From positions 32,798,001-32,862,000 of the forward strand of contig OZ038379.1 of NCBI GenBank assembly GCA_964036045.1: a stretch of 64,000 bases of DNA, written 5' to 3'. The position numbers were made by a program, and so were the translations under genes. Positions 2,560-62,540 of this stretch are shown here, one piece after another; the first letter of the stretch is position 1; every line of letters begins with the position of its first letter. The notes beneath the pieces are model-generated. The model worked only from the letters and a program-made list of their open reading frames with translations. It was not told where the DNA came from and ran no database searches. The stretch comes from Eutreptiella sp. 'Long Island Sound 2002'. Taxonomy: Eukaryota > Protista > Euglenida.

Positions 2560-3093
2560 GTGGCACCGTGGAGCATGCTCTACCCCCCCTTCATTTCAAG
2601 TGAGCCCCCCTCCGCACCGAACCTTCCCGAACCCCCATTTGGAGTGACGTGCGACTTCCCCCCCGACCCCAACATGGTCGGCCCCTCGCAACCCCCAATC
2701 AACTTTGTTGATGGGAACGGTTACATGGTGCTTCGGGGGGTGGTGGAGGCAAAAGATTGTGAAGTGGGGTGCGGGAAGGTCATGAAGGCTTGGGGGACTG
2801 GGAATGAGAAGGTGGTGGCGAAAAATTTTGAGCTCCTGTTCAACGCCGGGTTGTCGGAGGAGCAGGCGAAGGACCCTTCGCTGCCCCGGAGTTGGCAGAG
2901 CAAGGGGGCGCTACGGCAGGGGGTGGGGCCCCCCCTTTTGAAGAAGTTTCACCCCCCCCCCCACCTGGTAGAAAGTGTCCCCATTGTCAGGCAATTCCAC
3001 CCGATGACGCCGGGCAGCATCATTGTGGCGAGCGTAAGGAGTGGGCCCCAGCTCCCCCACACCAAGGTAGCCACGCATCCCGAGGCTCCTTAG
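2560..3093 (+). pseudogene. Hypothetical ORF remnant, probably from a mobile element
   Basis: 177-aa ORF whose middle (INFVDGNGYMVLRGVVEAK...KNFELLFNAGLSEEQAKD) reads protein-like while the opposite strand reads like antisense; no family recognised. Confidence 0.25.
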
Positions 3094-3308
3094 GCTTGCC
3101 GGGTTTTGCCACTTTGCGTTTTGGGCACCATTTGGCCGTGGTGGATGCTTTTGGGGCGGGATTTTCGCTGGATGATGCGTGAAGAATTTGGGGCATGAAT
3201 TTTTCCACTTCAAATACCTCAAAAGGAACCAAAAATGTAGCGTTCCCCGCCCCCCCCCCAAAAAAAAAACCCCTCAAAATTTAAGCAAATTCGCGTGAAT
3301 TCGAATCC

Positions 3309-4226
3309 TCAATTCAAAGGACCGCTTAACCCCTGTTCAGTCGTCCGTGAGCCACTCCATATCTGTATCCCGGATAAACTGTCTCGGAGGCCACATGTTC
3401 TTGGCTTTGAATTCTTTTCAGTCATAGCGCCAGTCCCCAACTGATCCCGGTACAATGACAGGCCACGGGACTTTGCCTCTCTTCCATGGTGCTCCGTCCC
3501 AGCGGGCAATATACTTCTTTGCGAGCCTAAGGGACCTCCAGCGGCCCCATTGAAGTAATTGCGGCATGGTTGCCCCCGCACAAATGAACATAGTGGCGCC
3601 TGCCCTGCGCTAGGTGTGCCAGATGATACCATGATACTCGGTACTTTGGAGTAGGCGCTCCATCGTCGTGGACAGGGTCTTGGTTCCGCCTGGTAGGAGG
3701 GGCAAGTATGGCGATCTCTCCTAGATGCTAGTTTGAAGCCGCAAGAAGCCAGAGAGTCTGTTAATATACTCCCCAGCCGGCCGAGTGATCCACTGTCGCC
3801 TGGACTTCTGCTCCCAAAATCGGATTGCGGATTCCGATTGCTACAGGTCCACTGCACGTATGCTGGCCGCGTCACTAATTCTGAGGCAATAGACTGTGGA
3901 CAGGGCAGCAAGGGCAACGACAATTCTTTCTTGTGGGGACTGTGCTTTACGGCCCATGGTCTCAATGACTTCCAGGGGGCCCAGCGTTGGCTCCTTCCGC
4001 TACCGGCGAGTCTCTCTTTCCCACGCACAAGCCTCCGGATGTTCTTCGGGACAAAGAGGTTGCACAGGTCCAATTCTTCGAGAGACGCATCCCGGACCCT
4101 GTAGTGTGGCGCTGCGCCAGACTGAAGAGGTACTATCGTAATCCGATTCGCGGATCCCTGATTCGAGACGTGAACTGTGAGGTAGCCATTGCCTTGACAT
4201 GCCGGACGTACACATGCAAAGCCCAT
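3309..4226 (-). CDS. Hypothetical intronless 305-aa ORF, probably TE-derived
   Basis: Longest ORF in this non-satellite region; both flanks (3275-3305, 4915-4985) are rich in AATT motifs; no motif recognised. Confidence 0.3.
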   Translation of the reverse strand: MGFACVRPACQGNGYLTVHVSNQGSANRITIVPLQSGAAPHYRVRDASLEELDLCNLFVPKNIRRLVRGKERLAGSGRSQRWAPWKSLRPWAVKHSPHKKELSLPLLPCPQSIASELVTRPAYVQWTCSNRNPQSDFGSRSPGDSGSLGRLGSILTDSLASCGFKLASRRDRHTCPSYQAEPRPCPRRWSAYSKVPSIMVSSGTPSAGQAPLCSFVRGQPCRNYFNGAAGGPLGSQRSILPAGTEHHGREAKSRGLSLYRDQLGTGAMTEKNSKPRTCGLRDSLSGIQIWSGSRTTEQGLSGPLN

Positions 4227-5684
4227 CAGAGCCCATCAAGAAATGCTCTCTATGCCGGTGCCTTTCTATGAGGGTCCGTTTGGGGGTGAAAGCTGTGTAA
4301 TTGCCCAAAACGGCGCGTACCGTGCACCCGCACCCACCAATGAAGAGCTTTTCATCTTAGCCACCTCTAATTGTTGCAATAGACTCGAAATATGATTGGA
4401 CCCTTGTTGAGATTGTAAATGAATATTCTACCTTTGTTCCACCGGAGGGGGGGGGGCGGTATGCACTAGGTTAGTGGTGGGGTAGACCTGGACGTGGGTG
4501 TCCTTGGTCTTCCCCAGCATGTTGGTACTCATCCCCCTCAACGGCTGCTCCACAATGGCGGGGGGGGGGGGGGAGTGCAAAAACCGCCCACTAGGGACCC
4601 GGAGTCGCAGTTCCCTCCACAACTCCGTGGCCCAGGCCTTTCCCCAAAAATAGGAGTTGCGGAGGGGTTCCACAAATCAATGTGTACAACATTGGGGGGG
4701 CAACCTCTGCTACCCCCAAGGCGTCCAAGTCATACATGGCCTCCTCCATCTGATGCTGGGCCACGGGCAGGCCTTGGTACGCCGCCAGTGTGTCGGCAAA
4801 GGGGTCTGGGCGGGATTGTTGATTGGCCAGCTAGTTGAGGGTTTGCGACATTGTCAGAAAAGAAAGTGGGAGGCAATCAAAGCGGAGAACGAGAGGGAAG
4901 CAATGCAAAGTAGTACAAATTCGTACGAAATTCATACGAAATTCTCAACTGTGAATTCGGTGCAAATTGTACGTCAATTTGACTAGATTCGGAGTGGGTT
5001 CGACCAAACGGCACCAATTATTCGTGACCCAGCGGCCAGTTAAAATATTAAATTTGGACACATTTACAATCGCACCATTTAGGCAAAGGTAGCACGAGAA
5101 ACACACACCATGGCACCAAGAACGCGCAAAACACATCAAAAATTTGACAAATTCACGCCTCGGTGAATCTCCCATCACACGTAGCCTAGACGCCTAGCAT
5201 AGACTGTCAGTATCCTCCGGATAAGTGCAATGCTCCCCACCCCCAATTTTTTTCTAGGGGTTGCGTTTCATCCACGGATTCGGGGACCGACACGGACTGC
5301 TAGCTTTTTGGTCTGAGGTCTAAAGCCGGTCCACACATTGGACCCGGCATCGGGGGCTCCTTTGGGACGCAAAAAGCAGGCTACTTCTTCCGGGCTCCCG
5401 CTAGGGCTGCGGCTACTTTCTTCCGGGCAACAATTATTCGACGCAAAATTTCACAAAAACGCAAAAAAACCAAAATTTTCCGTTATAATGGACCCTCCTG
5501 AGTAATATGTATAGTGGTGTGCCACTCCCCAAAGGGAAGCTGCCCCGGCTACCAAGGCCACGCGTGGCCAATCACATGTCCCCGATTGTGGGACACACTC
5601 ACAGAGCGCCGGGTTCCCACCCCATCCCCCAGTTAGCCTCGTTAGCACGTTAGCGCTCCATCGCAAATATCGCTGGTCAACCGT

Positions 5685-5714
5685 GGTCACGGTCACGGTC
5701 ACGGTCACGGTCAC
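5685..5714. repeat. (GGTCAC)5 microsatellite
   Basis: Five exact tandem copies read directly. Confidence 0.95.
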
Positions 5715-7048
5715 TTTTGGATAGCCTAATTAGGGTTGTTGTTAGGGTCCATGGCAAGGGTTTGTTTATTTCACGATTCCTTCTGGCCATTCCATCTCGC
5801 GGCACTTTTCCTCTGCTGGATTGTCGGATACGCCGTCACCGGCATATTGGCTGGGGGGCATGAATTTCGATGTGCCGGTACCGAATCCCGAATGAAAAAT
5901 CGTGTTTGGAGGGATTGGTGTTGCCGGCCGATTCGCGGGTGGTCCTATCTTGTGCCCTCGAGCGGTGGGCCATTTCTGTGGCCACCGTGGTGTCTCCTGC
6001 CTTGCGCTTAATATGGGGGGGCGGAACCCTATCCACGAAGACTCCAATCATCTTAGACTCCAGGTATCACATGGGACGGTTACTGAAACATAGAGCCGCC
6101 AGGGCATGCTGGACTGCGGCTAGGAGGTGGCCATTAGGGGGGAGGGACTCCTTCGGTGGTGCATTGTGATCCACGCAACCTAGGTTAAAAACGTCCCCAA
6201 CCTCAAGCCCACTGTCTAGACATGCTGGTGCTAGATCCATTATGTGGGGCAGCGCAGTAAGAAACCTATGGGAGGAGGCACCGGTCAGCTCTCTCAGGCC
6301 ACCACTAGCAAGGGGCCAGGGCCATGAAGTGGGGTTGTGCAAAGGTGCAGGGGTTCCCGTAGGGTGAAGAAATGCAGCGAAAAGTTAATACACAGAGAGC
6401 AATTGGCAAAGGGCGGACAACACAAGACGGGGGGGGGGGGGGCAAGAGCAGACCTATGGGCGACAAATATAGGTACGTACGGGGCGGCCGCGATATGGTA
6501 TGGCCGTAGGGTGGGGGTGACCACAACGATACGGGTGATACTGTGGCCGGGGTGCGGGGGCGGGCTTGGGTTTGGGTTCGGGTGGGTCACCACGGGCCAT
6601 CTGCGTCAGGGTGCGCGTGTCCGGGCCCAGACTAAGGTGCCGCTTGACAGGTGGCTGGACAGGTGGGGTTGCTGGTGCTGGTTGTGGGTGTCCTAGGGCA
6701 GCAGTGACGTCCGTGGGCGCGGGGGGGGGGGGGGGGGGAAGAAGGAGTAACGACGATCGTTGCTGTGCGACGAGCCCTGGCAGTGCTGTCTGGCCCGACG
6801 GCAAGGGTGGCCTTCTTGGAGAGGATTTGGGGACGGCAGGGCGTTGTGGATGGGGTACTGTCTGCGCCACGATGAGCCTCGCCCTCTCGAGGCTTCGGTC
6901 GAGGAAGTGCGACCAAGACACGCGCCGTCCGCCCGCCCAAAATGCTACTTGGCCCCGCGTGTCCAAGGCAAACCGGTACCCACGGGTGGGCCGTCTCCTC
7001 GCTTTTAGACGCGGCTCTCCCCCCCAGTAGAAGTGGGCCGAAGGCCCC

Positions 7049-7079
<31 letters not shown>

Positions 7080-7204
7080 TTTTTTTTGGGGGGGGGGGCT
7101 AGCCGCCAAGGAGGGCTTCTCTAAGGGACTTGCTAGTCGCTGCTAGTTGCCGGGGGGGGAGGGGGGCTAGGAGAGGGGGTTAGCAAAGGTCTAGTTCAGT
7201 TTGG

Positions 7205-7310
7205 CAGAGACGCGGTGGCCTAAGGGGTTACTCTACAACAACGGAGGCCTCCACTCTACCTCCTCATCAATGCAACGGTGGTTGTAGGCGCCCACACCCC
7301 CTGCCTGAGG
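7205..7310 (+). repeat. Dispersed repeat, second copy at about 35575-35675
   Basis: gacgcggtggcctaaggggt...aacaacggagg.ctccactc.acctcctca.caatg...ggttgtag.cgcccacacccc is present at both loci; probably a terminal segment of a retroelement. Confidence 0.8.
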
Positions 7311-7410
7311 AGGGCCGTATATATATGCTGCACTCTCCGACACGGCCCGTCACACCGGAGAGCAGCTGGGTGCCTGGCAGGTTGCCCAGGCCTACGAGGC
7401 ACCCGATTAG

Positions 7411-7590
7411 TTTTTTTTTTTCCTTCGCTGTACACACAAGTACTGCTCTATGGGAATAGGTTTTTTTTTCCTTCGCCGTACACACAAGTACTGCTCTATG
7501 CAATAATTTTTTTTTCCTTCGCCGTACACACAAGTACTGCTCTACAGCAGTAGGTTTTTTTTTCCTTCGCCATATACACAAATAATATAA
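7411..7590. repeat. About four tandem copies of a 46-50-bp unit
   Basis: T-run + CCTTCGCYGTACACACAAGTACTGCTCTA repeated; last copy degenerate. Confidence 0.9.
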
Positions 7591-8439
7591 GCAAAGAAAG
7601 AAAGAAAGCCCCTTTTTGCCTCCTTCTCGAGCCGGGGAAAAGCTCGAGGCAGGGATCTCCAGACCCCTGATTGCCTCCTCCTTGAGCCGGGGTATTAAGA
7701 TTGTCCCGGTTTCCTCAATAGCACCGGACGGTTGGGGCCCAAAAGAGGGCGGAAATGCTACATCACCCCTGCATTCTCGGGGGTCCCCAACAAAGGGAAC
7801 AAAATCGGAAGTCAAAACCTATGCCGGGGGTCACCATGATGCACCACGCAACGAAGCGTGGATTCAAAGATTGTCCTAAGCGCGCCCCCTTAGTATGGCT
7901 AGTAGCCATTGACCCTTGGTAACTAAGTGGGCCCGGAGGGCCCGGAGGGGGGGGGGGGGAGTCGCGTACCCGGACCGAGGAGACGCCCCCCCCTTGCCAG
8001 TACCGCATCCACCCAAGATCAAATAGGCCATCTAGGGTCGCTAGGGGCTGTGCAATCCACTCTTCAGTCCTTGGGGTGATGAGGTTGGTTGCCCTGGCGG
8101 CGCGGGGGGGGGGGGGGGGTTCCTGTTGGCCGAGGAGGATCTTTGGTGGGGGACTAAGGTAGGGTGGTGATGGGGGATTTCGGTGTGAGGATGGACTGTA
8201 CGATGGTGCTGGGGGGGATGTGGGTGTGGGCGGTTTGGGTGGGGGGGCTGAGTACTGGCGGTTGAGGTGAAGCCAGCTGTGCGAGGCTCTTGGGAGCGTC
8301 GGAGTCCCATAGTGATTGGTCTCCTTGATCGCCATACAGCGGCAACTCAGGCAGATCCCCTCACCCTACTGAGTGGGGAGATGCTGGGGACGAAGGCAAA
8401 AAAAGGCAATGCTTGTCACAGATTGAAAACATGTTCCGC

Positions 8440-8650
8440 CATTGTCCCGCAGAGACAGGTGCCGAGCAAAAACTTTCACAGACACGAGGAGTGGAGAGGT
8501 AAAGCAGCTGTGTGCATGAGGGATGGCTTGCTTACCTACTGGTTGCTGGGTCCTACATGTGGCGGCATGATGAGACGGACGAGTGGTTGGGGGGCCCTCC
8601 TCCGACTGCCACATGGGGCGCCCACAACCGCCCCAGTACCCTACCGCTCC
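8440..8650 (+). pseudogene. Possible decayed tyrosine-recombinase C-terminus of a YR retroelement
   Basis: Frameshifted fragments TFTDTRSGEVKQLCA*G and GWLAYLLVAGSY loosely resemble the HSxRRGGA and GxW...A..Y boxes. Confidence 0.25.
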
Positions 8651-9160
8651 GGCGGCTTCGCTGGTCCCCGGTATTTGTACTCGAGCCCCCCCCCCCCCCC
8701 CCCCCCCCCCCCGGGTGCCACCATCGGGCCCCGCCTCGTACATGGTATGCTAGGAAAAGAAGTGGCTTCTGTACCAAACGCCGTTCCCAACTAGCGTTCT
8801 CACCACCAATGAGCAAGAACAATAATGGTGAAGCATTGAACAAAAAGGATATTAGTTCGCTTCGAGAAAAAGTATCTATAGACCATGCCCCGGACAAGCC
8901 ACCTGAATCCGTGCGTTGCTCATCCCCACTGGAAAGCCAGAGGTTAGTCGCGCCGGCGGGACTCCACGGGTTCCTTTTCAAAGGGGGTGTGGGGTGTTGA
9001 CCTGCCTAAAGTAGGAAAAAAAGGACAAAGGAATTTTGCTTCGTGCGCCAGCAATATTGGAGGTTGGGGGGGGGGGTTGTTTCAATGTCCAGATAGGGAA
9101 ACATGTGTGGCCAGTGGTGACGCAAGCCGTTTTGAAAACGGGGCATGCCGGACGGCAACA

Positions 9161-9360
9161 NNNNNNNNNNNNNNNNNNNNNNNNNNNNNNNNNNNNNNNN
9201 NNNNNNNNNNNNNNNNNNNNNNNNNNNNNNNNNNNNNNNNNNNNNNNNNNNNNNNNNNNNNNNNNNNNNNNNNNNNNNNNNNNNNNNNNNNNNNNNNNNN
9301 NNNNNNNNNNNNNNNNNNNNNNNNNNNNNNNNNNNNNNNNNNNNNNNNNNNNNNNNNNNN
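9161..9360. other. Assembly gap (200 N) with a duplicated 134-bp overlap
   Basis: 9027-9160 is identical to 9361-9494. Confidence 0.95.
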
Positions 9361-10381
9361 AAAGGAATTTTGCTTCGTGCGCCAGCAATATTGGAGGTTG
9401 GGGGGGGGGGTTGTTTCAATGTCCAGATAGGGAAACATGTGTGGCCAGTGGTGACGCAAGCCGTTTTGAAAACGGGGCATGCCGGACGGCAACAACATCT
9501 ATTTACATGTCTGGTCAACTAGTCATAACAAGCAAAATGAAAATTCACATTGGGTCCACCAAGCAGCCTTTTCCGGGCTCCATGTGGCAGCGTGACTGGA
9601 CCCGGAGTCCGACCCCACATTGGAGGCACCTTTGGAGGAGAAAATTTACCCAAAAATTTCCGGGCTCCCAGGAACCATACAAAAAATTTCGCACCGATGT
9701 TGCACCATGCTACGTGGCGCCCAAACAGACCCGACAAGGAAAACTCGGGAGGAAATACCGTCGCTGCACCGCATGGTACGACTATATTCTGTGCTAGCCT
9801 CCAGGCTACATGTGTAAGGGTACGTGGTTAGTGTTATTTCTTGATGGGTCTTGGATGGTCGCAAATATTTCCTAATGGGTTCCCGAACGGACAGCACGAA
9901 GATTGCACGTATCAGCACAGGAGCCCTGTCCATAGTGTGTGCCTGCTTCATAGCAAAGAACAAGCAAAACAAATCTTCACGGGTGATAAAATTAGGGCGG
10001 CTGTACTTTAAATGTATTTCTTCCGTGTGTGGACATCGCGGCCAATCAATGTGATCAAATAACGGGCACAATCAGAGAGAAACAAAGCCGTGGACCATTC
10101 GTTTGCAAAGGCGGAGCCCAAGAATACTGCAATGGAACTTGGGACGGCAGCGACTCGGTGTCGCCAAGATCCTTAAGAAGCAGGGGGGGGGGGGGGGTTG
10201 CGGAGAGGTAACGCGGACAACCTGCCCCATTGGGCTGTTGTGGCTCGCTTAGAGTGTCCTTTTTCGGCAATATGCCCCGCCGCAAACGCGGCGGGAAGGC
10301 CAAGCGACGCCGCCGTGGTGGCCGCCGCCACCAATGGTCGGGGGCGGGCACCGCCCGCCGGCGCGCGAAGGCCCGCCAACA

Positions 10382-10406
10382 CTTAGGCGCCACAAGTTGC
10401 CCACCC
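10382..10406 (+). repeat. Left TIR of element A
   Basis: CTTAGGCGCCACAAGTTGCCCACCC; reverse complement of 16896-16920 with one mismatch. Confidence 0.95.
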
Positions 10407-10812
10407 CCCACCTGGCGCTATGGCCCACGGAAGTCCATGTTGTAATGAGGGGAAAAGTATGTGAAAAGGGGTGTTATTTTTTGGGTACCCAAACCCCCCT
10501 GGTGGCAACATGCAAAAACAAGGTGTGTATTTCAAATATATGCCATTATTTGCATTTCTGGAAACACACAGATTTTCAAAATAAAGACATTCAATCACCA
10601 AAATATAGTGTTGTTTTACATTTAGACCACTGCATTCCAGTGTGTGGGGGGGGGGGGGGGGGGGGGCTGCCTATTTTTCTCTCCCCTTTGTTCGAGGTTG
10701 ATCACAGAACCCCCCTATACACCACAGATGAGGGAACCCCAAACATACCTTTCATTGAAGCACACAAAAAACTATCCCAAAGCATGTACTTGTATTTCCT
10801 ATTTTAACCAAC

Positions 10813-11135
10813 CTGGCCGAAATCTCGGCCAGCTCTTCGAAAAAGTCCAAACACATGGTCCTATTTGACAGACAGGCCTAAGCTGGCCGAAATTTCGGCC
10901 AGGTCCATCGAAACTCCAAATATGATCACTGAAATGGGTACCTAAGACAGTAGACATGAGCAAGGAACACAGGAGCAGTGACATTTGAACAGGGTGTGCA
11001 ACATAATATACTCAATTACAAGCAAATACTTGCCACCTGACGAATCAAAGCAGACTTTTGCAGTGCCTATGGGGAAACACAATAATAAAAGGCTGAAGAG
11101 GCTGAGGACTGCATGCTGGCCGAAATTTCGGCCAG
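10813..11135. promoter_or_regulatory. Three 20-bp palindromes downstream of the accessory gene
   Basis: CTGGCCGAAATTTCGGCCAG at 10883 and 11116; one-mismatch copy at 10813; first two are 70 bp apart. Function unknown. Confidence 0.85.
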
Positions 11136-11174
11136 ACTTCATGCTGACAGGCAATATAAGCAGCACGACTGGCA

Positions 11175-13761
11175 TTAGCGCTTGCGCAGACCAGATGCAC
11201 GGGGCTTCTTAGCACCTGTGTTAGCAGGCTGCTTGGCAGGGGCTGCAGCACCAGACTTGGCAGTGGCAGAGTTCTGTGACTGTGTGTTTCCACCCTGGGA
11301 TGGTGAAAAATGATTCACAAAAGTATTCATACCTTTGCCAGTAGGGGCAACAGTGCCTGAGGAGGAAGCTGGGGTGGCCTGAGCGCACTGCGTGCCACTG
11401 GGTGAGGGGGCAGGGGCAGTTTTGGGTTTCTTCTTTGGAGTCTGTGTCTCTGGTTGCGACTCTGCCTCCCCATCTTGCTCCTCAGGATCCTCATCTACAT
11501 ACCTAACCCCAGAACAATCCACAGGAAAACCTGCCCCCAAGTCGTGGTACACATCCTCCCATGACTTGGGGGGGCACGTGTCGGCGTTGGTGATACCTGC
11601 TCTGATGAGCTGAACAAAGTCATCGGGCACAACAGTCTCCTCACCCAAAAGGGCACACACAACATTACAGTCCTTGGAAAACCTGGTAGACATCATGCTT
11701 GCAAAATACACAGACAGAGTCCCCAGCAAAAACCAGTTGCCTGCCCGTTCTGGGACCGGAACCAGGCTCAAAAGAAATGAGAATATTTCAACAGGCATCA
11801 CAGACGACATGGGTCCTTCAGTAAAAGCCACGTAACGGGGAAGCCCATTATCAAAGGCAGTAGCAGAACAAATGGAAACCAGATGGGACGTAGAAGTGTA
11901 CAGCGGGGTCTTGCTTGACAAATTGTAAAGTGCAACATCACACTGATACATATCCTCAGCCACAGTGGCCTTCAAAGCAGCAACAATGGCTTTCACATCA
12001 GCAGACTCACCCGCAATGAACACAGGCACACCGGACAAAAGCAGCTGCGCAACCAGGTTATGCAAACCAGCTGTATAGAGGCGGGGCACCTCAATGACAC
12101 AAGCAGCAAAGGGCAGTGAACTAATGATACTGGGAACAGGGACTCCACAACGCATTGCCATCAGTTCCACACGGCCTGACTTTGCAATGAGTTTGCCTGT
12201 GCTTGACTCAACGAGGGACTCCCTAGCACACTGGATACTGACCAGACCAGTATCAGATTTTTCACAAACAGGCTTAGCAACAGGCTTCTGCAACAATCCC
12301 CGCAACCCCTCATATTTGGGTTCCTTCCAAAGAGGGGCCTTAATTACTGCTGACCACGGGGGCCAGGGGTTTTCTTCAGTCCAGGTCCAACTGCCATAGG
12401 CTACCTTCAGGTGTGATGCAATAGCGCACTGCCTTTTGGCCATCTCGATAGTACCAAGTGTAGCTGCAGACAGGTGGTAGCACAGGGTGGGCTCCTATTG
12501 TGCATTAATTGAACGACACACAAGCTGGCCGAAATTTCGGCCAGGTCGGTCGATTTATTCGAATACAAACCCCTGTTTGACCAAAACATACCTCTGGTGT
12601 TGTTCACAAGCCCATTGGTAGCCGCCTCGGGATGAAGAATGTGCCAGGACCACATCTGGGCCTTTTTAACATCTTTTATAATTTTTTGAGACCAGGTAGG
12701 GTACTTTTTGTCCCATCCATGTAACCTACGATCTCGCGAAGTCGGTCAGGCGTGATGCCTTCCACTTCCTTGAACGTACCCAGTGCGGGATGTAGTCCAC
12801 GCTTTTCCATGGCTGCCATGGCGTCTACTGAAGGAAGACCCACAAATTTCACCAAACGCCCAACGCCACCCCACCGTTTGGCAACAGCACTCTGCACAGG
12901 AGAACATGTGGAACACAGAAGCTGGCCGAAATTTCGGCCAGGTCGATCGACAAAACCGAATTAATAAATGAAACACACCACAGTGCCTTCCTCGGCAGTA
13001 ACACCACACTCTTCAAGCATAACAGTAATGTGATGGTACAGGGTGTACTCATTGGCATCCTCATCCTCAAGCCTATCCAGGAGTAGGGACATTCGCTCCG
13101 ATGTGGTGGATGCTGAGCCGGCAGTGGTCTGGATTTGATGTAAGCCTGCAAGCCGGCGCCTAGTCCGCAGGGGGCAGTCCTGTTTGACTTCATAACCACC
13201 AAATACCAGGGTCCAATCCGGAGTCTCCATATTTTTCATCTCAAATTCGGTCTTGTGTTTTTGGGCAGCAGTGTAAACATGCTGACCCCCCAAAAGAACC
13301 CAGCGAGTGGCTGTGCAACAGGAATATTCGTAACAGCAGGGTCGAAAATTCAGACGCGAAAACGGTACTATCGAGAAGAATACCACAACACACATACGAG
13401 TGACTTTATAAAAAAGAAGATCCTGGATGTAATCCACAGGCGGGGCTGCCTTCAGATCGTCGTAGCGACGTTGCACGCGATCATCCGAAATCCTACGGAC
13501 CTGCCCAAATTTTCGGTCGTGGTCGATAATAATCTGATCCCACCGAACCTTTATTTTCGTCGTTGACGTAACCCAGTCGGATAACTTGATGGAGGATGAT
13601 GAATTTTTCTTTGGTGCGGCCTTAGGCTTCTTTTGAAGTCCCTCTGTGCTCGCCTGGTCCTCTTGAGACTGGGATTGCACTTGAGATTGCCCATTGTCTG
13701 CTGCAGGCTCACCATCTGGCGAAACAGCCATGTCCTGCGATACCCCTCCAGGCTCAGTCAT
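11175..13761 (-). CDS. Accessory gene of element A: four exons, about 761 aa, N-terminal ParB/Sulfiredoxin-like domain, C-terminal alpha/beta domain and a basic tail
   Basis: Exons 13761-13398, 13310-12979, 12891-12592 and 12463-11175, joined by GT-AG introns 13311-13397 (87 nt), 12892-12978 (87 nt) and 12464-12591 (128 nt). All phases match if one A is restored in the A6 run at 12682-12687 (LKKIIKDVKK). ParB-like signature GQVRRISDDRVQRRYDDLKAAPP...WVLLGGQHVYTAAQK. Domain call is by eye. Confidence 0.75.
12525..12544. promoter_or_regulatory. 20-bp palindrome inside intron 3 of the accessory gene
   Basis: Perfect CTGGCCGAAATTTCGGCCAG within intron 12464-12591. Confidence 0.9.
12922..12941. 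promoter_or_regulatory. 20-bp palindrome inside intron 2 of the accessory gene
   Basis: Perfect CTGGCCGAAATTTCGGCCAG within intron 12892-12978. Confidence 0.9.
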
Positions 13762-13880
13762 AAAATAAAGGGCTACAAGGCAACATTTCATGAAGGGGAG
13801 AGTTCCCAGATAGCAAATAACAAGCACAGATCAACCAAAAAAGGACCAAAACGGACTGCCTGACAGGAAATTCGGATAAC

Positions 13881-14039
13881 CTGGCCGAAATTTCGGCCAG
13901 CACTGCTCTGCATGTCAAACCACTGTGTACAAATACCATTCTGAGAGGCTGGCCGAAATTTCGGCCAGAACCTTAAGTCATTTGTTTTCTGGGGCTAGCC
14001 ATATGACAAAACAACAAGTCTGGCCGAAATTTCGGCCAG
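13881..14039. promoter_or_regulatory. Intergenic array of three 20-bp palindromes
   Basis: Perfect copies at 13881, 13949 and 14020 (periods 68, 71) between the transposase stop and the accessory-gene start. Confidence 0.9.
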
Positions 14040-14131
14040 AAAAACATGAAACAGCAAATAGACACACCAAAATCACTGGCAATGCGTGGCAGAACCCATA
14101 CCACAGTGACAAACACAGCTGCAAACAGAAA

Positions 14132-16343
14132 TCAGTCCCAATCCTGGGTATCCACACCGATGTGTTCCGCCTCATCTAGGGCTTCAAAGGAGGCAACGCT
14201 GTCTGCATCACAATCAATATCCTGGTCACTATCACAAGAGTCGACAGCAATGGAATCATCAAGGGCGGGGGGGGGTACTGGGCGGGGGGGGGGGCGGGGG
14301 GGGTACTGGGGGGCCTCTGGCTCGGGGCTTCGGGGGTGGCTTTGGGGGCAAGGCAATTCCACCAGGAGCAGCAGCAGCAGCAGCAGGCGGTGCACGGTTG
14401 GCAGCGCGAATAGAAGCATGTGCAGTACGCAACACCCCTTGCTCGGCAGCAGTGCGGGCAGGTGCATTTGTCTGTAAAAAATCCTCAACACCCTCAGGAA
14501 CCCTGGTACGTGCAACCAGATTTTGCATTGCATGCAACAGAACCACTTTTAAACGGTCTGTGGTGATTCGTGTCCTGGACATGGTACCGGGGAACGTCAA
14601 ATCCTCAACTGCATCCAGTCTTCTCACCTCAACTTTATAGTCCGGAACGGGAACACAAATGGGCAGGCTCTGTGTATGGGCTGTCAAGATGAATTGTTTA
14701 AGATTGGCAGAGAACATTGCCACGGATCTCTCAGTCAGCACACCACGCAAAACTTTCTCTCCGGGTTGGACAGGGGGAAGTATCAGAAATAAATCAGACG
14801 ACTGTTGGACACTAGTACAGGCCGTGTTGCGGCGACAGTGGGCTGAGAACCGACTCAGAAGTGCCTCACCCAGCTCCTCAGAGTGGATACACCCTAGGGA
14901 GGCGGAATGCCACTGACTCCAAAACAAAAGAGCAACAGCGGTGGTTTTCACGTACTCCGTGGTTAACTGTTCCTCGGGCTTTAGGATGTTCAGCATGAGC
15001 AGTAGGGACATCTCAAGTGCCTGCTTAGCTACAATACCGGAACCTGCCCCCCGTCCCTCCCAGTTGCACTCACGAACCAAAGTCCCAATGCTGAAAGCAG
15101 CTGGACAGTATGTGTACAGCAAAGCCTTAAGGGCTAATAACATACGCAAACCCTTGCGCTGAATGGGTGTCAAGTCCCGCTGGCTATTGAGCACGGAAGT
15201 GACGCGCTCATCTAGTCTGCCTCTATTGGACGATGTGGCTAGCATGAGTCCAAGCAACGTCTTCTCCATATGGATGACCTTGACCTTGCGAGGGAGGATA
15301 GACCCAACCTGAAGGCTGTTCCCCTGCTCCAAAAACTTAATGAACGGCAGGAACGCCCTGTAGATCAATTCAACGCAATACTTATAGCTATGCCATACTC
15401 CGTACACCAAAGGAAAACCCAACAGTAATTGTGGTACATTCCAGGGAACATAAGCAGCACCATAACACAGCTTAAGTAGGGCAAAGTGTATTTTCATGTC
15501 CACAAGCAACGGAACACAGTGTCTGGTGCGGTGTTCCACACATGACAAATCAACCACGAGTTGCAAAAGCTCTTTGTGTGTGCCGGAGCGGAGCTCAGAC
15601 AGGAAAAAGGGTCTCCAGTTGAGGGAACGAACATCTTTTCTGGCAATATCCAAAGGAGCACGAACCCAAACTCTCTGAATACCTTGGTTGGCAACATCAA
15701 TACGATCAAACAATGCTCTATGTGAGCGAAAGATGTCATCAGCAACCTTTGGTACCCTGGCCTCAATTTCGGCCAGCTCCGGCAGACCCCGGTATGCAGG
15801 TAGGGCAGTAGTGTGCAAAACAGCAACAGCTGTACAGTTTAGGGTTAAGTCGGGTGAATGGGGATCAGCTCCCGACCTGTAACGCCTCAGGTTATCAAAC
15901 CATATACAAACTTGCCTACGGTGCATGGTGTTCCACAAGTTGTGTGCTGCTAGTCCAGCACGATGGTGAATGGACTCCTGCTTAGTGTTACACTGACCAA
16001 GGACTCCTACCTTACGGCGTTGGCGGCAGGACATAATACCCCAGTTGTAACCAGACCCCCAGTTAGAGTATGGGAGGGCCATACGGCGCAGCAGGCAGTA
16101 TAGGGCATGGAACTGTGACAAAAACGTCATGTACCATCGTGGGGGCTTCTTCTCAGTGGCGGCGGCCTTCAACTGTGTCAGGGAGTGCCGGCTCCTGCGA
16201 TTCTTCCGCAACAAGAGGCAGAATTGCAAAAGCTTTTGCAGAGTCCCACCACGTAATGCATTTCGCAACAGCCCTTTGGCTGTAGTAGCAAAAGCACCAG
16301 TAACTGCAGCATGTACAACATTGACAGTAATAGCAGAAGACAT
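14132..16343 (-). CDS. DDE transposase, distantly Transib/RAG1-like (RNase H fold)
   Basis: 694-aa ORF 14259-16343, with an acidic tail continuing to the 14132 stop after a frameshift in the G-runs at about 14265-14310. Candidate triad D150 (IWFDN), D282 (LVDMK), E493 (HSEELGEA, cf. Transib SEEAxEA); conserved H318 (YGVWH). Lies inside TIRs with a 5-bp TSD. Splice-acceptor-like cttgtctcag just upstream of the ATG. Confidence 0.8.
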
Positions 16344-16414
16344 TAATGCTGAGACAAGAAAACAGTTATGTAGGAGTGTATGGTGTAATACTCATGAACA
16401 ACGACAATTGCAAG

Positions 16415-16715
16415 CTGGCCGAGATTTCGGCCAGGTGTGTTCAAAGGGGAAATAATTGCTTACATGTTCAAAAATAGGAAAAGCTGGCCGAAATTTCGGC
16501 CAGCCCACCCAAAAACCAGAATATAAGTGCTTGAATAGTGAACAGACCAAAAAGCTGGCCGAAATTTCGGCCAGCCCTAAGAAAAATGAAAATAATCATG
16601 CCTATTCACCAAGAAACCAAAAAGCTGGCCGAAATTTCGGCCAGAAGGGTCAAAAACTGCATATACACATAGTTGTTTGCAACGTTACCCAAAACCTGGC
16701 CGAAATTTCGGCCAG
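16415..16715. promoter_or_regulatory. Subterminal array of five 20-bp palindromes with unique 49-51-bp spacers
   Basis: Starts 16415 (one mismatch), 16484, 16555, 16625, 16696; periods 69, 71, 70, 71. Confidence 0.9.
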
Positions 16716-16895
16716 CTTCAGAAAAACGTCAAATACAACACACTAGAAGACGGGGATACACAAGGCTAACACATCAACACGTATTTCAACGGGTGTCACA
16801 CAGCTCTGCCAACAACTTTGGTCACATACGTCAAACAACATACTCAAAGTAGAAATGTAGAATATTGTCAAATCGCGCGTATACGGGGTCCTAGA

Positions 16896-16920
16896 GGGTG
16901 GGCAACTTGTGACGCCTAAG
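16896..16920 (-). repeat. Right TIR of element A
   Basis: GGGTGGGCAACTTGTGACGCCTAAG followed by CAACA. Confidence 0.95.
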
Positions 16921-18169
16921 CAACACCAAGGCTAGGTCATGACCGGTCACCTAGCGGGGTGGCTAGTCCGCAACCTCTGGTTGGGCGCCCAGGGCCGGCT
17001 AGTTTTCCAGCGACCTTGCGCACAGCCAGAGGCAGGTGCCCTACTTGCGGCGGCCGCCGCCGCGGATCTAGTACGCCGGCTGCACAGCCAACCCACGCAA
17101 GTACGCACCCCTGAAGGCAAGCCGGAGGTCAAAAACGGACTTCCCGGGCGATCTATACGAGCACCCATGGCGCGTGCACTGCAACGGCCTCGTGCCAACC
17201 CTGGCCTTGTCCCAGCACAGGCGAATCAGCGGACAAGCTCTCCTGTATGTGTGGGTCAAGGGCTCACCGCATCTAGCACGGTGCATTGTGCGCCTCTTCC
17301 GGCCCCTGTGAGCGGCCAACATATCCGCCTGTGGTTCCTAGGGACCTTGCCGGTCACTGCCTCGCTTCACGCTGACCTCGCCGGCCGGAGTTTAGGGGGG
17401 GGGGGGACTGGCCTGTTGCCCCCTTGTTGATGACTATAATGTGATCCGGCCTGTAGGTGTTGAGTTGTGTAGGCCATGCATCGCTTTGGGTGCGCTGCAC
17501 TTCCTCTAGCCGTGGCTTCCCTAGGTTCTGCCCAGTTGACCGTTTTTATTTTGTATCTTTTCCCTTCTCTGTTGGGGTTTCTTTGGCGCTCCGTCTCTGT
17601 TGGTATTTACCCTGTGCGTGTAGCGCGCCGGGCATGGGTTACATGCACTGCAGATGGAGAGGGTGGGGTTGTGGCATTCCGACTGTAGCGAGTGGATGGA
17701 TGTGGGTGGGTGGGGGGGGGGGCGGGCACTGATTTCGGCATTCGGCGTTTGCCTGCAGCCGTGGTTTCCGCTACCACTCACCCTGCATCCGCAAGAGGGC
17801 GAGTCCAGGGCGAAGAATGAATTGTCAACTTTGGTTGCAGTATTCTTGTGCTCCGCCTTTGCACAAACTAGTTGAGCCTCGCCTCAACTTTTGTTTGCAC
17901 CTCCATACTTAGGCACTTTTTCTATTTTCTCCCGCCCCCCCCCCCCTGTGGTTGTGCCGTACCAAGCTTGCGAGCCGCACCGCAGAGCAGCATCCGTCCT
18001 TGTGAAACTAGTCATCCCGCGTGGTTCAAGACTGCCCTAACCGTGTTGCAGCAAGGCTTTAGGTGTATTGGTTCTGGGTCCGTAATAGTGTGGGGTCTCT
18101 GATGGTTGCGGAGAGGAAGATACCGCACCCGTCCACACTATCACCGGTACCGGTTGCGTAGACACACAA

Positions 18170-58000: not shown

Positions 58001-59002
58001 ATGCACAGTGCCACTGCATGGGGGCAGTGGGCACTGGAACTCCTCCTGCGTAGTGCCATATTGCCGCAGGGGACTGGGAAGTGCAACTCTTGCCGCACCG
58101 CCTTGGGGCAACGGGCAATGGGGCTCCCGCAACACACCGCCGTGTTGCCAGGGGGCACTGGGATGTGGAACCAATGCAATGCAACACCGCATTGCCCATG
58201 GGTATTGGGCAGTTGATGACCTACCACACTCTCCCGTTATTGCAACCGTGGAGCTCTTGCAATACAGTGCGGCACCGCCTGGGGGAGATGGGCAATGGGA
58301 ATCCCTTAACACATCGCCGGTGCGCCTGGAGACTGTAGCTAGTGGAACTCTTGCGGTGCACTACCTCATTCAGGAGGTTCCTCATTCCACTCCCCACAGA
58401 CTCCACGTGGTATGGTAGTGTGCATCTACAATTGCACTGCCCACTCGCCCAAGGCAGTGCGGCAATATGTAGCAGGAGTCCCAGTGCCCACTACCCGCAG
58501 GCACAGCGGCAGCGTATTGTGGGGGGCCGATTGCCCACTGTCCCTTGGCAGTGCGGCATTGTATTGCAAAAGATGTACTGCCCACTGTCCCCGGGTGGTT
58601 TTGTATTGTGCTCAAACCATTCCACTTCCCAATGTGCCACAATGGCAGGGCGGTTTGTGGCAGCAGTTCGACTGCCCACTGCCCCGGAGTAGTGTGGCGG
58701 CGTGTAGCAAGACGTCCATTGCCCATTGGCCCAAGGCAGTGCGGCACTATGAGGCGGGAGTGCCCTTGCCCGGTGTTCCACACATTGCCGCCCTGCTTTG
58801 GGATAGCGGATAGTGGCACTTCTGCGTCACACTGCCGCACTACCCAATGGGCCGTGGAACTGTTGCCATACACTACGGCGCTACCCTGGGACATTGAGCA
58901 GTGGAACTCTTCCAGACACCGCCTGGGGAAAGTGGGCAGTGGAGCTCCTACGACATACTGCCGCACTGCCTAGGGGCAGTAGACAATGGGCCCTCCGCAA
59001 TA
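55046..59002 (+). repeat. 45-47-bp satellite with an internal inverted block at about 58420-58770
   Basis: Same unit as 52030-53838; orientation flips and then reverts. Confidence 0.95.
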
Positions 59003-59435
59003 CTTAGGCCACACTAACTGCCCACCCCCCTACCCACAGGCTGGGCTCCACGGGGCCATCCTGTACCTCCCCCCCCCAAAAAAACAGGGTATGAATTTTG
59101 CACCTAGGGGACCCCTTGCTCTTGAGAGGAAAAAATGAGTATCTCTATTTACCTAAAATGCCATTGTCATGTAACCACATTGTAGTTGTTAAAACACAAT
59201 AAGCATGTATGCATACTGGAAAAGCAGAGGAAGAATGCATGTTTCAGCAATACAACAAACCTTTCGGTGTTACACACAAATGTATCAACCTGCGAAGCAA
59301 TGAAGTGTAAAAAGTAGGGCGGCACACACTTGGCAAGGGTTGCTGCACCCTGTGTGTGCCCAAAAAACTGTCAATTGACAGTCACTCAAATCCATGCATC
59401 ATAATCAAGGTCTCTATTTGCCATTAATGAGACCT

Positions 59436-59524
59436 CTGGGCGAAATTTAGTCCAGCTTTGCAAAAATGTAAAAACGAACCGTGTATACCAAGAAATACCT
59501 GAACCTGGGCGAAATTTCTTCCAG
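59436..59524. promoter_or_regulatory. Two decayed variant palindromes of element B
   Basis: CTGGGCGAAATTTAGTCCAG at 59436 and CTGGGCGAAATTTCTTCCAG at 59505; period 69. Confidence 0.8.
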
Positions 59525-59653
59525 CTTTAGTAAAACACAAAAAAGCATTGCTCAAGACGTCAATGGTATCTGCAGAGACAGCGCACAACCCCATTGTGAC
59601 GTGTAACAGGGAAACCATACAACACAGCAGTCACAGCACACACCACTGTCACT

Positions 59654-60708
59654 CTATCGCCGCTTCCTCAGGCCGGGTGCCTTTGGTTTGGCACCCTTAC
59701 CAGGAAACTGCCCACCATATGCCTGTCCTGCCTTGTCACCAGACATCTCACTGTTAGCATTACCAGTGGCACCACGTCCATTCATGGGCACCACAGCTCC
59801 AGCCTTCAGGTCCCAACCCTGCTCAAGAAATTTAATAATAGGGGCAAATGCCTTGTAGGTTATTGCCATAGAATACTTATATGGGTGCCAGACACCGTAA
59901 AGCAAGGGGTGTCACAACAGGAACTTGTCTACGTGCCACGGGGCATAGCTTGCTCCGAACCACATTTTCAGGAGTGCGTAAAAGATCTTCATGTCAATCA
60001 GAAATGGCACAGTCCGTCTCGTCTTCACCTACAAGCATTCTAGCCCCCTGAGAAACACCAGTAACTCAACATGACTTCCGCATTTCAGGTGTGATAACAG
60101 AAAGGGCCTCCAGTTGAGGGATACCACAGCATTGCGAGCATAGTCCAGAGGTGCACGAACCCAGGTCCGCAGAACAGGCCCATCTGGGACGGTACCGCCC
60201 TGCAACAGCAACCCAACAGAGCAAACTAGGTAGTCGACAACCCCGGGTATACATTGTGCACACCATCCAAACCGGGCAGACCGTGGTACTGGGGCAGCGC
60301 AGTAGTGTGCAACACACCGACAGCAGTCACATTCAAAGTCTTATCAGGGCTATGGGGGTCGACCCCATTGGTGTAGCGACGGTAATTGTCGAACCACGGG
60401 GTAATTTGCTGTCTCTCAAATGAATCCCGCAGGTGTGAAGCTTGAACACTGGCCTGGGCCGAGATAGTAAGGGCATTGATAGTGCATTCCCGTGCCATTG
60501 CCAGCTTACGGCGGATGGACTGGGTCATTGTACCGCGATATGAGGCTCCAGTGGCTCTCTCAGCACGGGGATATGTCAGCACTCGCACAATGTTATAAAG
60601 TGAGAAAACTTGCTTCTGCACGACCAACAACCGTCTTGGTACACGACTAGAACTGAAGGCAGCCCGCACATACCCAACATTACGTCTAGTCTTTCTATTG
60701 TGACGCAA
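59654..60708 (-). pseudogene. Truncated transposase of element B, fused to the 3' end of the accessory gene
   Basis: WFDNYRRY, DPHSPDKTLNVTAVGVLHTTALP, VRAPLD, LNWRPF, IDMKI, YGVWHPYK and IKFLEQG all match element A; stops and a frameshift present; ends KGAKPKAPGLRKRR*, cf. GAKKPRASGLRKR* of the accessory gene in A. Confidence 0.9.
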
Positions 60709-60921
60709 ATCCAGTGCCAGCTATAGCAGCGGGAGTGTCCTCCCTTTGTTCAATGGCACCCCAATTAGAGTCGGGGTACGAACGCGAGTACCCCCCACGG
60801 CTGTTTGAAGAAAGCGCACATCAATCATGTCTCACAGCCACATTGGCAGAAGCAACCCGAAGAGTCAGTGAACAGAACCCAACAGAGGTACCAACCTGTA
60901 GGTAAAGGGTGTCAAGGCAAG

Positions 60922-61190
60922 CTGGAAGAAATTTCGCCCAGATTCAACTTTATCGACTGGTGGGCCTAAGCGACAGGCAGGCAGAGGGCAACATATCATG
61001 CACAGCACAAGGAAATAAGCAACAGGGGGGGGACCGGAGGAAATTTCGCCCAGGATCACCGATTGGTGTTTTTAAGCTATATATTTTGTAGAACAGGCAG
61101 AGCTGGGCGAAATTTCGCCCACGGTAATCAAGACATCAAAATATGTAGACTTTTTTGCTATCCGGGGGGGCTAGGGGAAATTTCCCCCAG
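60922..61190. promoter_or_regulatory. Subterminal array of four variant palindromes of element B
   Basis: Starts 60922, 61034, 61103, 61171 (last periods 69, 68); consensus CTGGGCGAAATTTCGCCCAG. Confidence 0.8.
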
Positions 61191-61396
61191 GTCATGGCAA
61201 ATTGGCAAATAGAGACAGTGAATTTGAGTGTCAACATGTGTATGCATAGTACACGCAATAAATGTACAGCTATTCATCACCACCTATTACAGTGCAGTCG
61301 ACACATGGAAAACATAGGCACAAAATAAAGACACAGAAAAGGCAACAAAGTGCACATGTTTGGGTCATAAGGCGCGGGTAGTTAGCGTGGCCTAAG

Positions 61397-62540
61397 CAAT
61401 ACACCGCCGCTCTGCCTGCAGGCAGTGGGAACTGAGACTCTTGCAACAGAGTGACGGAGTGCCTTGGGGTAGCGGGCAATAGAATTCGTGCTCCACACTG
61501 CCGCACTACATGGGGGCAGTGGGTAGTGGAACTCGTGCTACACACCGCCAGAGTCCTTTTGGGGCGCGGGTAGTGGAAATCTTGCTGCACACTGCCGCAC
61601 TACCTTGGGGCATTGGGCTATGGGAAACCTGCTAGCCACCACCGGACTACCTAGGCGCTGTGGGCACCGAAACTGGTGCAGTAGATTGCTGCACTGCTAG
61701 GGCGTACCGGGGAATGGCACTGGCACACTAGACCGCCACAATGCTTGGGGGTATTGTGTAGTGGATCTCATGGCCCCCACTGCCTTGGGGCAGTGGAGCT
61801 CCTCCAATACAATGCCGCAATGCCTGGGCGCAATCGGCACTAGAACGCTTGCTGCTGCACACTGCCACACCGTCCGGGGGCAGTGGGCATTGGAACTCGT
61901 GTTGCACACCATCAGACTGCCCCTAGGCAGCGGGTAGTGGAACTCCCGCCTCACGTTGCCACACTGCCTAGGGGCTATGGGCCATGGGACTCCGCCTTCA
62001 CAGTGCCGCAGTTCCTAGGCGAAGTGGGCAGTGGAACTCCCGCCATACGCTGCTGCCCTGCTCGGGCACAATGGGCTCTGGAACTCCCGCTGCACATTGC
62101 CGCACTACCTTGGGGCAGTGGGCAGTGGAAGTCCTGCTGCACACCACTACACTGGCCGTGGGCAGTCGGCAATGGAGCTCCTCCTGCCCAATGCCACAGT
62201 GCCTTGGAGAAATGGACAATGGGACTCTTGCAGTACAATGCCGCACTGCATTGGCGCATTGGGCAATGGTACTAATGCAATACACCAACGCACTACGTGG
62301 GGGTAGTGGCCAGCGGATCTCCTGCCACATACTACCTTGGGGCAACGGAGCTCCTGCAGTACAATGCCGCACTGCCCGGGGTCAGTGGGCAACGGAACTT
62401 CCGCAATACACTGCCACATTGCTCGGAGGCAATTGGCAGTGGAACTCTTGCTGCCTAGAGGTAGTGGAAACACGAAATCATGCAAAACAGTGCCGTGCTG
62501 CCAGGTGGCAATGGCTAGTGGAAGTCTTGCTGCACACCAC
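61397..62540 (+). repeat. 45-47-bp satellite, continuing after element B
   Basis: Resumes with CAATACACCGCC directly after the TIR. Confidence 0.9.

Follow-up and report, generated by a model that had tools for sequence, protein, structure and literature searches.

Eukaryotic DDE transposons are at present sorted into about 20 superfamilies (PMC9587614). The transposases of the P element, Hermes, and Tn5, like RAG1, have a ribonuclease (RNase) H fold that is interrupted, after strand 5 and before helix 4, by an insertion domain (PMC8230255). The EnSpm/Mirage/Chapaev/Transib/RAG1 group is defined by C(2)C and H(3-4)H motifs and has target site duplications (TSDs) of 2 to 5 bp, and hAT5 families with 5-bp TSDs also exist (PMC12730594). 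Here, we analyzed a 6,539-bp element (positions 10382 to 16920) in a 64-kb stretch of DNA, hereafter called the window, from Eutreptiella sp. 'Long Island Sound 2002' (contig OZ038379.1, positions 32,798,001 to 32,862,000). We consider it likely that this element is one copy of a young, several-hundred-copy family of DNA transposons with terminal inverted repeats (TIRs), and that its DDE transposase represents a separate, unclassified lineage. A preliminary description of the window had proposed a two-gene TIR transposon with a DDE-type transposase and a 5-bp TSD, which our analysis supported, and had related the transposase to Transib/RAG1 or to DUF6589, neither of which was borne out (see below).

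Element ends, target site duplications, and copies

The 25-nt TIRs are complementary at 24/25 positions (96%), and CAACA flanks both ends, just as the preliminary description had read them (Table 1). When the whole 64 kb was searched for the TIR with up to 3 mismatches, only the two ends of the element itself were found, with 0 sites expected. We compared the element with ten others, namely six near-identical copies (L001 to L006), three sister-subfamily elements, and one deleted derivative located in the window at 59003 to 61396. A CTTAGG-type tip was found in all 11 elements, with one base altered in two of them, and the termini CTTAGG..CCTAAG are common to the window family and the sister subfamilies. 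The TSD was 5 bp long in 11/11 elements and different in sequence in each; it was perfect in ten and had one mismatch in the remaining one. Because a perfect 5-bp TSD has a chance probability of about 1 in 1,000 and ten of them were found, the structure and the 5-bp duplication are real. There was no evident sequence preference among the duplicated targets.

The six near-identical copies have the same TIRs 6.4 to 6.5 kb apart and the TSDs ATATG, TATCG, TAATG, TGTCC/AGTCC, TTGAG, and TGAGT. Full-length identity among the copies was 96 to 99% over 6.5 kb, except for one 90% copy with a 175-bp deletion, and because of this high identity we conclude that the family is young and recently active. 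A 97%-identical relative of the window transposase open reading frame (ORF) is the representative of a 267-member cluster whose sequences all come from a single metagenome assembly (ENA ERZ25074135) that has contigs of 0.3 to 4.4 Mb among those listed, and the clusters of exon D of the second gene (gene 2) have 134 and 175 members in which the ORF is retained. These cluster sizes indicate that the family numbers several hundred copies. Reverse-transcriptase and MULE elements neighbor the element copies; together with the introns and the Mb-scale contigs, they show that the host is eukaryotic.

The sister-subfamily elements, whose transposases are 42 to 46% identical to the window protein, have related tips, which begin with CTTAGGCCACG.. 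but with CTTACGCCACG.. in one element, and the TSDs TCCAA, TGGTA, and GTTGT. The deleted derivative in the window also belongs to a sister subfamily and is flanked by CAATA (58998 to 59002 and 61397 to 61401). Most of its transposase gene and most of its gene 2 are gone and both palindrome arrays (see below) are kept, which shows that non-autonomous deletion derivatives retaining both ends exist in this group. The L014 contig has two elements (505 to 7476 and 8338 to 14660) that belong to different subfamilies and are separated by 860 bp, each with its own 5-bp TSD. In L007, the 46%-identical subfamily copy, exons A and B of gene 2 are separated by a 976-amino-acid ORF with a weak MULE transposase match (10714 to 13644), apparently an unrelated DNA transposon that inserted into the element.

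The preliminary description had given the transposase ORF as about 737 amino acids. This length holds for copies L002 and L003, whose stop corresponds to window position 14132, but not for the window copy, in which the uninterrupted ORF has 694 amino acids (16343 down to 14259 on the minus strand). It ends at 14259 because a C-run that codes for proline, at approximately 14270 to 14300, has changed in length and shifts the frame, leaving the conserved acidic tail that ends at 14132 out of frame. The ORF lengths among the copies (694, 696, 722, 735, and 737 amino acids) vary with the length of the C-run, and part of this between-copy variation may be read error. Gene 2 of the window copy lacks one A in a run at approximately 12682 that is A7 in five other copies. 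As assembled, the window copy is therefore probably non-autonomous, unless the two homopolymer frameshifts are read errors. The window has 26 homopolymer runs of G or C of 12 to 29 nt (e.g., at 7050, 8686, 10646, and 25093), some of them inside the element. It also has 200 N at 9161 to 9360, with the same peptide repeated in the ORF translations on both sides, and this masked or gap stretch appears to sit between direct repeats.

Conserved residues and predicted fold of the transposase

The large ORF contains the motifs noted in the preliminary description, i.e., WFDN (D150), LLVD (D282), YGVWH (H318), and SEELGEA (E493). We aligned the window protein with 39 relatives, whose identity to it goes down to 21%, and found D150, N151, R228, P230, D232, R235, D282, W317, H318, E360, G420, R424, W475, E489, and E493 to be invariant across the 40 sequences. 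Between D282 and E493, the only column with more than 50% Cys is C426 (30/40) and the only invariant His is H318; CxxC occurs nowhere in the window protein.

An exhaustive HMMER search returned 977 cluster representatives at E ≤ 1e-3, including 164 at E ≤ 1e-30, and the ten that we looked up were all on short contigs of metagenome and public sequencing-run assemblies. No family member was found by a pattern-plus-tblastn scan of 185,579 prokaryote species genomes or by a pattern-based scan of IMG/VR viral contigs, and a scan of metagenome contigs with the transposase profile yielded just four short loci. When the 40 aligned members were searched against Pfam, no transposase-related family was matched at E ≤ 1, a search that covered RAG1, hAT dimerisation, BED, THAP, P element, MULE, KDZ, Plavaka, and DUF6589; the matches obtained were scattered singles to unrelated families, the best at E 0.02. 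The proposed link to DUF6589 thus found no support for the window protein or for its 39 relatives. PDB sequence and profile searches and NCBIfam searches with the transposase found no match.

An AlphaFold model built from the 40-sequence alignment had a predicted local distance difference test (pLDDT) score of 88.7 and a predicted template modelling (pTM) score of 0.83. In this model, a strand bearing D150 (145 to 154) is followed by a strand at 168 to 177, an inserted helix, strands within 235 to 249, and helices within 256 to 273; D282 directly follows a strand at 279 to 281 and precedes a helix (283 to 294) and a strand (312 to 314). An all-helical block then extends from approximately 316 to 487, before a helix at 490 to 505 that has E489 and E493 at its start. 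This order of elements matches that of the RNase H fold; strand 1 bears D150, D282 comes after strand 4, and E489/E493 are at the start of helix 4, the positions that the acidic residues have in the P element, Hermes, RAG1, and Tn5 enzymes (PMC8230255). From the model, we infer that the transposase is a DDE enzyme of the RNase H-fold type whose insertion domain, all helical and approximately 170 residues long, lies between strand 5 and helix 4, which agrees with the fold anticipated in the preliminary description, and we propose D150, D282, and E493 as the catalytic triad on the basis of their invariance and predicted topological position. The invariant H318 lies just after strand 5, where C/DxxH would be; the residue three before it is Gly in 39/40 sequences (G315-x-W317-H318).

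A Foldseek search of the model against the PDB gave the P element (6p5a) as the best match (E 5e-3, probability 0.99, TM-scores 0.24 and 0.34), followed by Hermes of the hAT superfamily (E 1.5e-2 to 0.15, probability 0.35 to 0.85, TM-score about 0.2 to 0.3). HzTransib ranked below them, at 16 and 29 (E 0.23, probability 0.2), ISCth4 was matched at E 0.4 (probability 0.21), and RAG1 was absent from the top 50. The top meaningful matches were all DDE transposases with insertion domains. Among viral predicted structures, the best fold match was a Pandoravirus hAT protein (E 1.3e-2).

Gene 2 and the palindrome arrays

In agreement with the preliminary description, a second spliced gene was found on the minus strand, with four exons and three GT-AG introns (Table 1). 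As all three introns are canonical, with GTATGT or GTGTGT donors, a dinoflagellate host is not favored. The exon model was derived from tblastx of the window against L007 and from direct reading of the sequence, and the intact gene would encode approximately 751 amino acids. Its reported lack of resemblance to RAG2 was also upheld, as no gene 2 piece had a RAG2 or Kelch match in Pfam.

L007, L014, and L015, whose transposases are 42 to 46% identical to the window protein, each have pieces of gene 2 downstream of the transposase homologue, with order and strand unchanged. In two unrelated metagenome scaffolds, four weak collinear matches were found downstream of a 32%-identical transposase (L009), and a single weak match (E 1e-3) accompanied a 26%-identical one (L008). 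Because gene 2 recurs across these loci, we take the two-gene layout to be ancestral to a broad section of the family. An intron was predicted at the same position, just before the ..GGQH.. motif, in all lineages examined, corresponding to intron 1 in the window. The first of the two L014 elements carries a more divergent gene 2, 30 to 36% identical to that of the window.

Searches with the gene 2 pieces, including the exon D domain, found no Pfam, NCBIfam, or PDB profile match, ParB and DGQHR included, and word-based homologue searches found near-identical copies only, or two proteins. An AlphaFold model of the N-terminal part, from a shallow alignment of 15 rows, had a pLDDT of 40.9, and the fold search with it gave noise. 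As read from the sequence, the N-terminal ..GQ.R.. followed by the strand-like ..LLGGQH..A.. is reminiscent of box II of ParB and of the DGQHR motif that DndB-type proteins have.

The element also contains a feature that the preliminary description did not mention, a perfect 20-bp palindrome, CTGGCCGAAATTTCGGCCAG. With up to 2 mismatches allowed, it occurs 14 times in the window, where 0 would be expected, and always inside the element. The palindromes form arrays with a spacing of about 70 bp at the places listed in Table 1, and introns 2 and 3 of gene 2 contain one each. In the sister subfamily, the palindrome is CTGGGCGAAATTTCGCCCAG, in which a symmetric pair of changes (C to G at position 5 and G to C at position 16) keeps it palindromic, and in both placement and spacing (approximately 69 bp, L015) it follows the pattern of the window family. 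In L009, the palindrome is an unrelated sequence of 18 bp, TTCGCTCCATGGAGCGAA, with 13 sites, four of them spaced 69 bp apart upstream of the transposase. Each gap between the coding segments of the L009 gene 2 (3721 to 5689) holds a pair of these palindromes 67 to 68 bp apart, and possibly the introns of this gene were built from the repeat unit of the element itself. L008 has yet a different palindrome, of 24 bp and interrupted, which is found both upstream of the transposase and in the gap that precedes the GGQH motif.

Because the placement of the palindromes is conserved while their sequence is replaced, with the spacing also kept in L009 and L015, a co-evolving reader encoded by the element would be expected. 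The palindromes are thus probably binding sites for an element-encoded protein, although this is more speculative than the assignment of the ends and the transposase. The reader could be the gene 2 product or the transposase, the latter through its 140 helical residues at the N terminus, and binding by the reader would mark the element and help to pair its ends or control its two promoters.

In each of three lineages, one degenerate copy of the palindrome specific to that lineage falls within the coding sequence of the transposase, i.e., in the window (Table 1), in L009 (2893 to 2910), and in L008 (3304 to 3327). The segment that it encodes in the window protein, ..LAEIEA.., sits in a confidently modelled helix. 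Elsewhere in the window, 17 other long ORFs had no informative Pfam match, and the window had no Rfam match.

Table 1. Coordinates of the element, its genes and palindromes, and the second element in the window
Feature	Position	Strand	Basis or remark
TSD, left copy, CAACA	10377..10381		directly outside TIR
TIR, gene 2 end, starts CTTAGGC	10382..10406	+	inverted-repeat search
Three palindromes, 3' of gene 2 stop	10813..11135 (10813, 10883, 11116)		palindrome search
Gene 2 exon D, stop 11175-11177; conserved domain and basic low-complexity tail	11175..12463	-	ORF kept in clusters
Gene 2 intron 3, GTATGT..CAG, 128 nt, palindrome at 12525-12544	12464..12591	-	sequence reading
Gene 2 exon C, frameshifted here (A7 run at about 12682)	12592..12891	-	tblastx and sequence reading
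Gene 2 intron 2, GTGTGT..CAG, 87 nt, palindrome at 12922-12941	12892..12978	-	sequence reading
Gene 2 exon B, starts with conserved ..LLGGQH..	12979..13310	-	tblastx against L007 and sequence reading
Gene 2 intron 1, GTATGT..CAG, 87 nt, in frame, no stop	13311..13397	-	sequence reading
Gene 2 exon A, ATG at 13731	13398..13731	-	tblastx against L007 and sequence reading
Intergenic array, three palindromes, transposase stop to gene 2 start	13881..14039 (13881, 13949, 14020)		palindrome search
Transposase gene; proposed catalytic D150, D282, E493	14132..16343	-	intact frame 16343-14259; stop 14132-14134
Degenerate palindrome (2 mismatches) in transposase coding sequence, encodes ..LAEIEA..	15757..15776		palindrome search
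Subterminal array, five palindromes, 69-71 bp spacing, transposase start to TIR	16415..16715 (16415, 16484, 16555, 16625, 16696)		palindrome search; also 71-bp tandem repeat
TIR, transposase end	16896..16920	-	inverted-repeat search
TSD, right copy, CAACA	16921..16925		directly outside TIR
Second element, internally deleted, sister subfamily (2,394 bp)	59003..61396; with TSD 58998..61401	-	TIRs begin CTTAGGCCAC; six variant palindromes

Placement of the family and comparison with described transposons

The transposase is best treated as structurally among the insertion-domain transposases, nearest to those of P and hAT, while fitting the sequence definition of none of these groups, and its lineage is probably of superfamily level. 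The enzyme would cut both ends of the element and join them to a target cut with a 5-bp stagger, as the P element, hAT, and Transib/RAG enzymes do. The preliminary description had called the element undescribed, and consistent with this, we found no described family with these features in the literature searched, no Pfam match for the 40 members, and no PDB sequence match. Several points weigh against our reading. Repbase and Dfam stood outside this comparison, and the family may be catalogued there, perhaps with a name that says little about it. The structural placement is soft, since nothing in the PDB was matched at E ≤ 1e-3 and the TM-scores were low (0.24 to 0.34). D232, E360, or E489, which are likewise invariant, could be catalytic instead of the residues proposed. 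That the element moves by cut-and-paste and not by a copy-type mechanism is suggested by its enzyme class and by the deleted derivative. Lastly, the parts that gene 2 and the palindromes would play in transposition are conjectural.

The affinity to Transib and RAG1 put forward in the preliminary description would place the family, as a divergent member, within the Transib superfamily. Elements of the Transib group do make 5-bp TSDs (2 to 5 bp for the clade, PMC12730594), the transposase is a predicted DDE enzyme with an insertion domain, and HzTransib is among its fold matches. However, the D282-E493 interval, with one partly conserved Cys and one invariant His, lacks the C(2)C and H(3-4)H motifs, the termini are CTTAGG..CCTAAG rather than CA..TG, HzTransib falls below the P element and Hermes while RAG1 is outside the top 50, and neither a RAG1 match in the 40 members nor a RAG2 match for gene 2 was obtained in Pfam, all of which makes this origin very improbable. 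A highly divergent member of the hAT superfamily (hAT5 group) or of the P superfamily would fit the fold search better, as the P element, the Pandoravirus hAT protein, and Hermes were the best matches, and the insertion domain is close in size to that of the P element. Elements of hAT and P usually have subterminal repeat arrays, and 5-bp TSDs are made by hAT5 families. Even so, we regard such a membership as distinctly unlikely, given that the 40 members have no hAT dimerisation, BED, THAP, or P element match in Pfam, that Gly instead of Cys or Asp precedes H318 by three residues in 39/40 of them, that the PDB profile search was empty, that there are two genes, and that P elements make 8-bp TSDs. 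An integrase-type (Ginger) origin was rejected for the lack of an integrase match in Pfam and for the insertion domain in the fold.

A different question is whether gene 2 and the palindromes take part in transposition or are passengers, the former being a captured host gene and the latter either sites for host transcription factors or, in untranslated regions and introns, RNA hairpins. The palindromes do lie in places suited to promoters, upstream of each gene, and to a terminator, downstream of gene 2, and transcripts containing them would form hairpins. On the other hand, the position and orientation of gene 2 are kept beside transposases that are only 26 to 46% identical, in three other assemblies, and the internally deleted copy keeps both arrays. 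Moreover, the replacement of the palindrome sequence between lineages at conserved places, and the symmetric double change in the sister subfamily, are the pattern predicted by a co-evolving, element-specific binding protein and not by a fixed host factor. We therefore think it rather unlikely that they are passengers.

A more far-reaching interpretation, which we would put forward only as a long shot, is that the family is an undescribed, superfamily-level DDE lineage, widespread in microbial eukaryotes, with an obligatory accessory protein whose ParB/DGQHR-like N-terminal domain would bind the element-specific, parS-like palindrome arrays at the ends, promoters, and introns and thereby assemble or regulate the transposition complex. 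With nearly a thousand cluster representatives, no Pfam model, and signatures that fit no superfamily, the family would add a lineage to the present classification of eukaryotic DDE transposons, and it would improve the repeat annotation of protist and algal genomes and metagenomes. Its 5-bp TSDs in the absence of the Transib/RAG1 signature weaken TSD length as a marker of RAG ancestry. Gene 2 and the subfamily-shifting palindromes offer a testable case of a transposon with its own site-specific DNA-marking system, and as a young family with several hundred copies, some with apparently intact transposase or gene 2 frames, it is a candidate for an active element.

Compared with the P element, the family differs in having no sequence or profile similarity to it and no THAP domain, G-x-W-H in place of D-x-x-H, TSDs of 5 bp rather than 8 bp, and a second conserved gene. 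Nevertheless, the P element is its best fold match, with D/D/E on the same structural elements and a helical insertion domain of similar size (190 residues versus approximately 170 here) (PMC8230255), and both have short inverted repeats and internal repeats. The hAT superfamily gave the second-best set of fold matches (Hermes and the Pandoravirus protein), and the family has 5-bp TSDs as in hAT5 (PMC12730594) and subterminal repeats, but it has no C-terminal dimerisation domain or BED finger in Pfam, no C-x-x-H, a different terminal sequence, and two genes. Its likeness to Transib/RAG1 extends to a second gene, which some Transib/RAG-like elements have, in addition to the 5-bp TSDs and the insertion-domain DDE enzyme; it departs from them in the missing C(2)C/H(3-4)H signature and CAC termini, in a fold match weaker than those to P and hAT, and in a gene 2 that does not match RAG2. 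PIF/Harbinger, with its Myb-like partner, CACTA, and MuDR resemble it in combining a transposase with a conserved accessory gene inside one TIR pair, whereas their transposase families are unrelated and their TSD lengths different, and gene 2 matches no known domain. Finally, although profile searches with gene 2 were empty and no methyltransferase domain was detected in it, the motif reading of gene 2 and the short palindromes, comparable to parS, are reminiscent of the ParB-like accessory proteins of algal transposons such as Sola1-1 of Ectocarpus (PMC12477816) and of bacterial ParB/parS.

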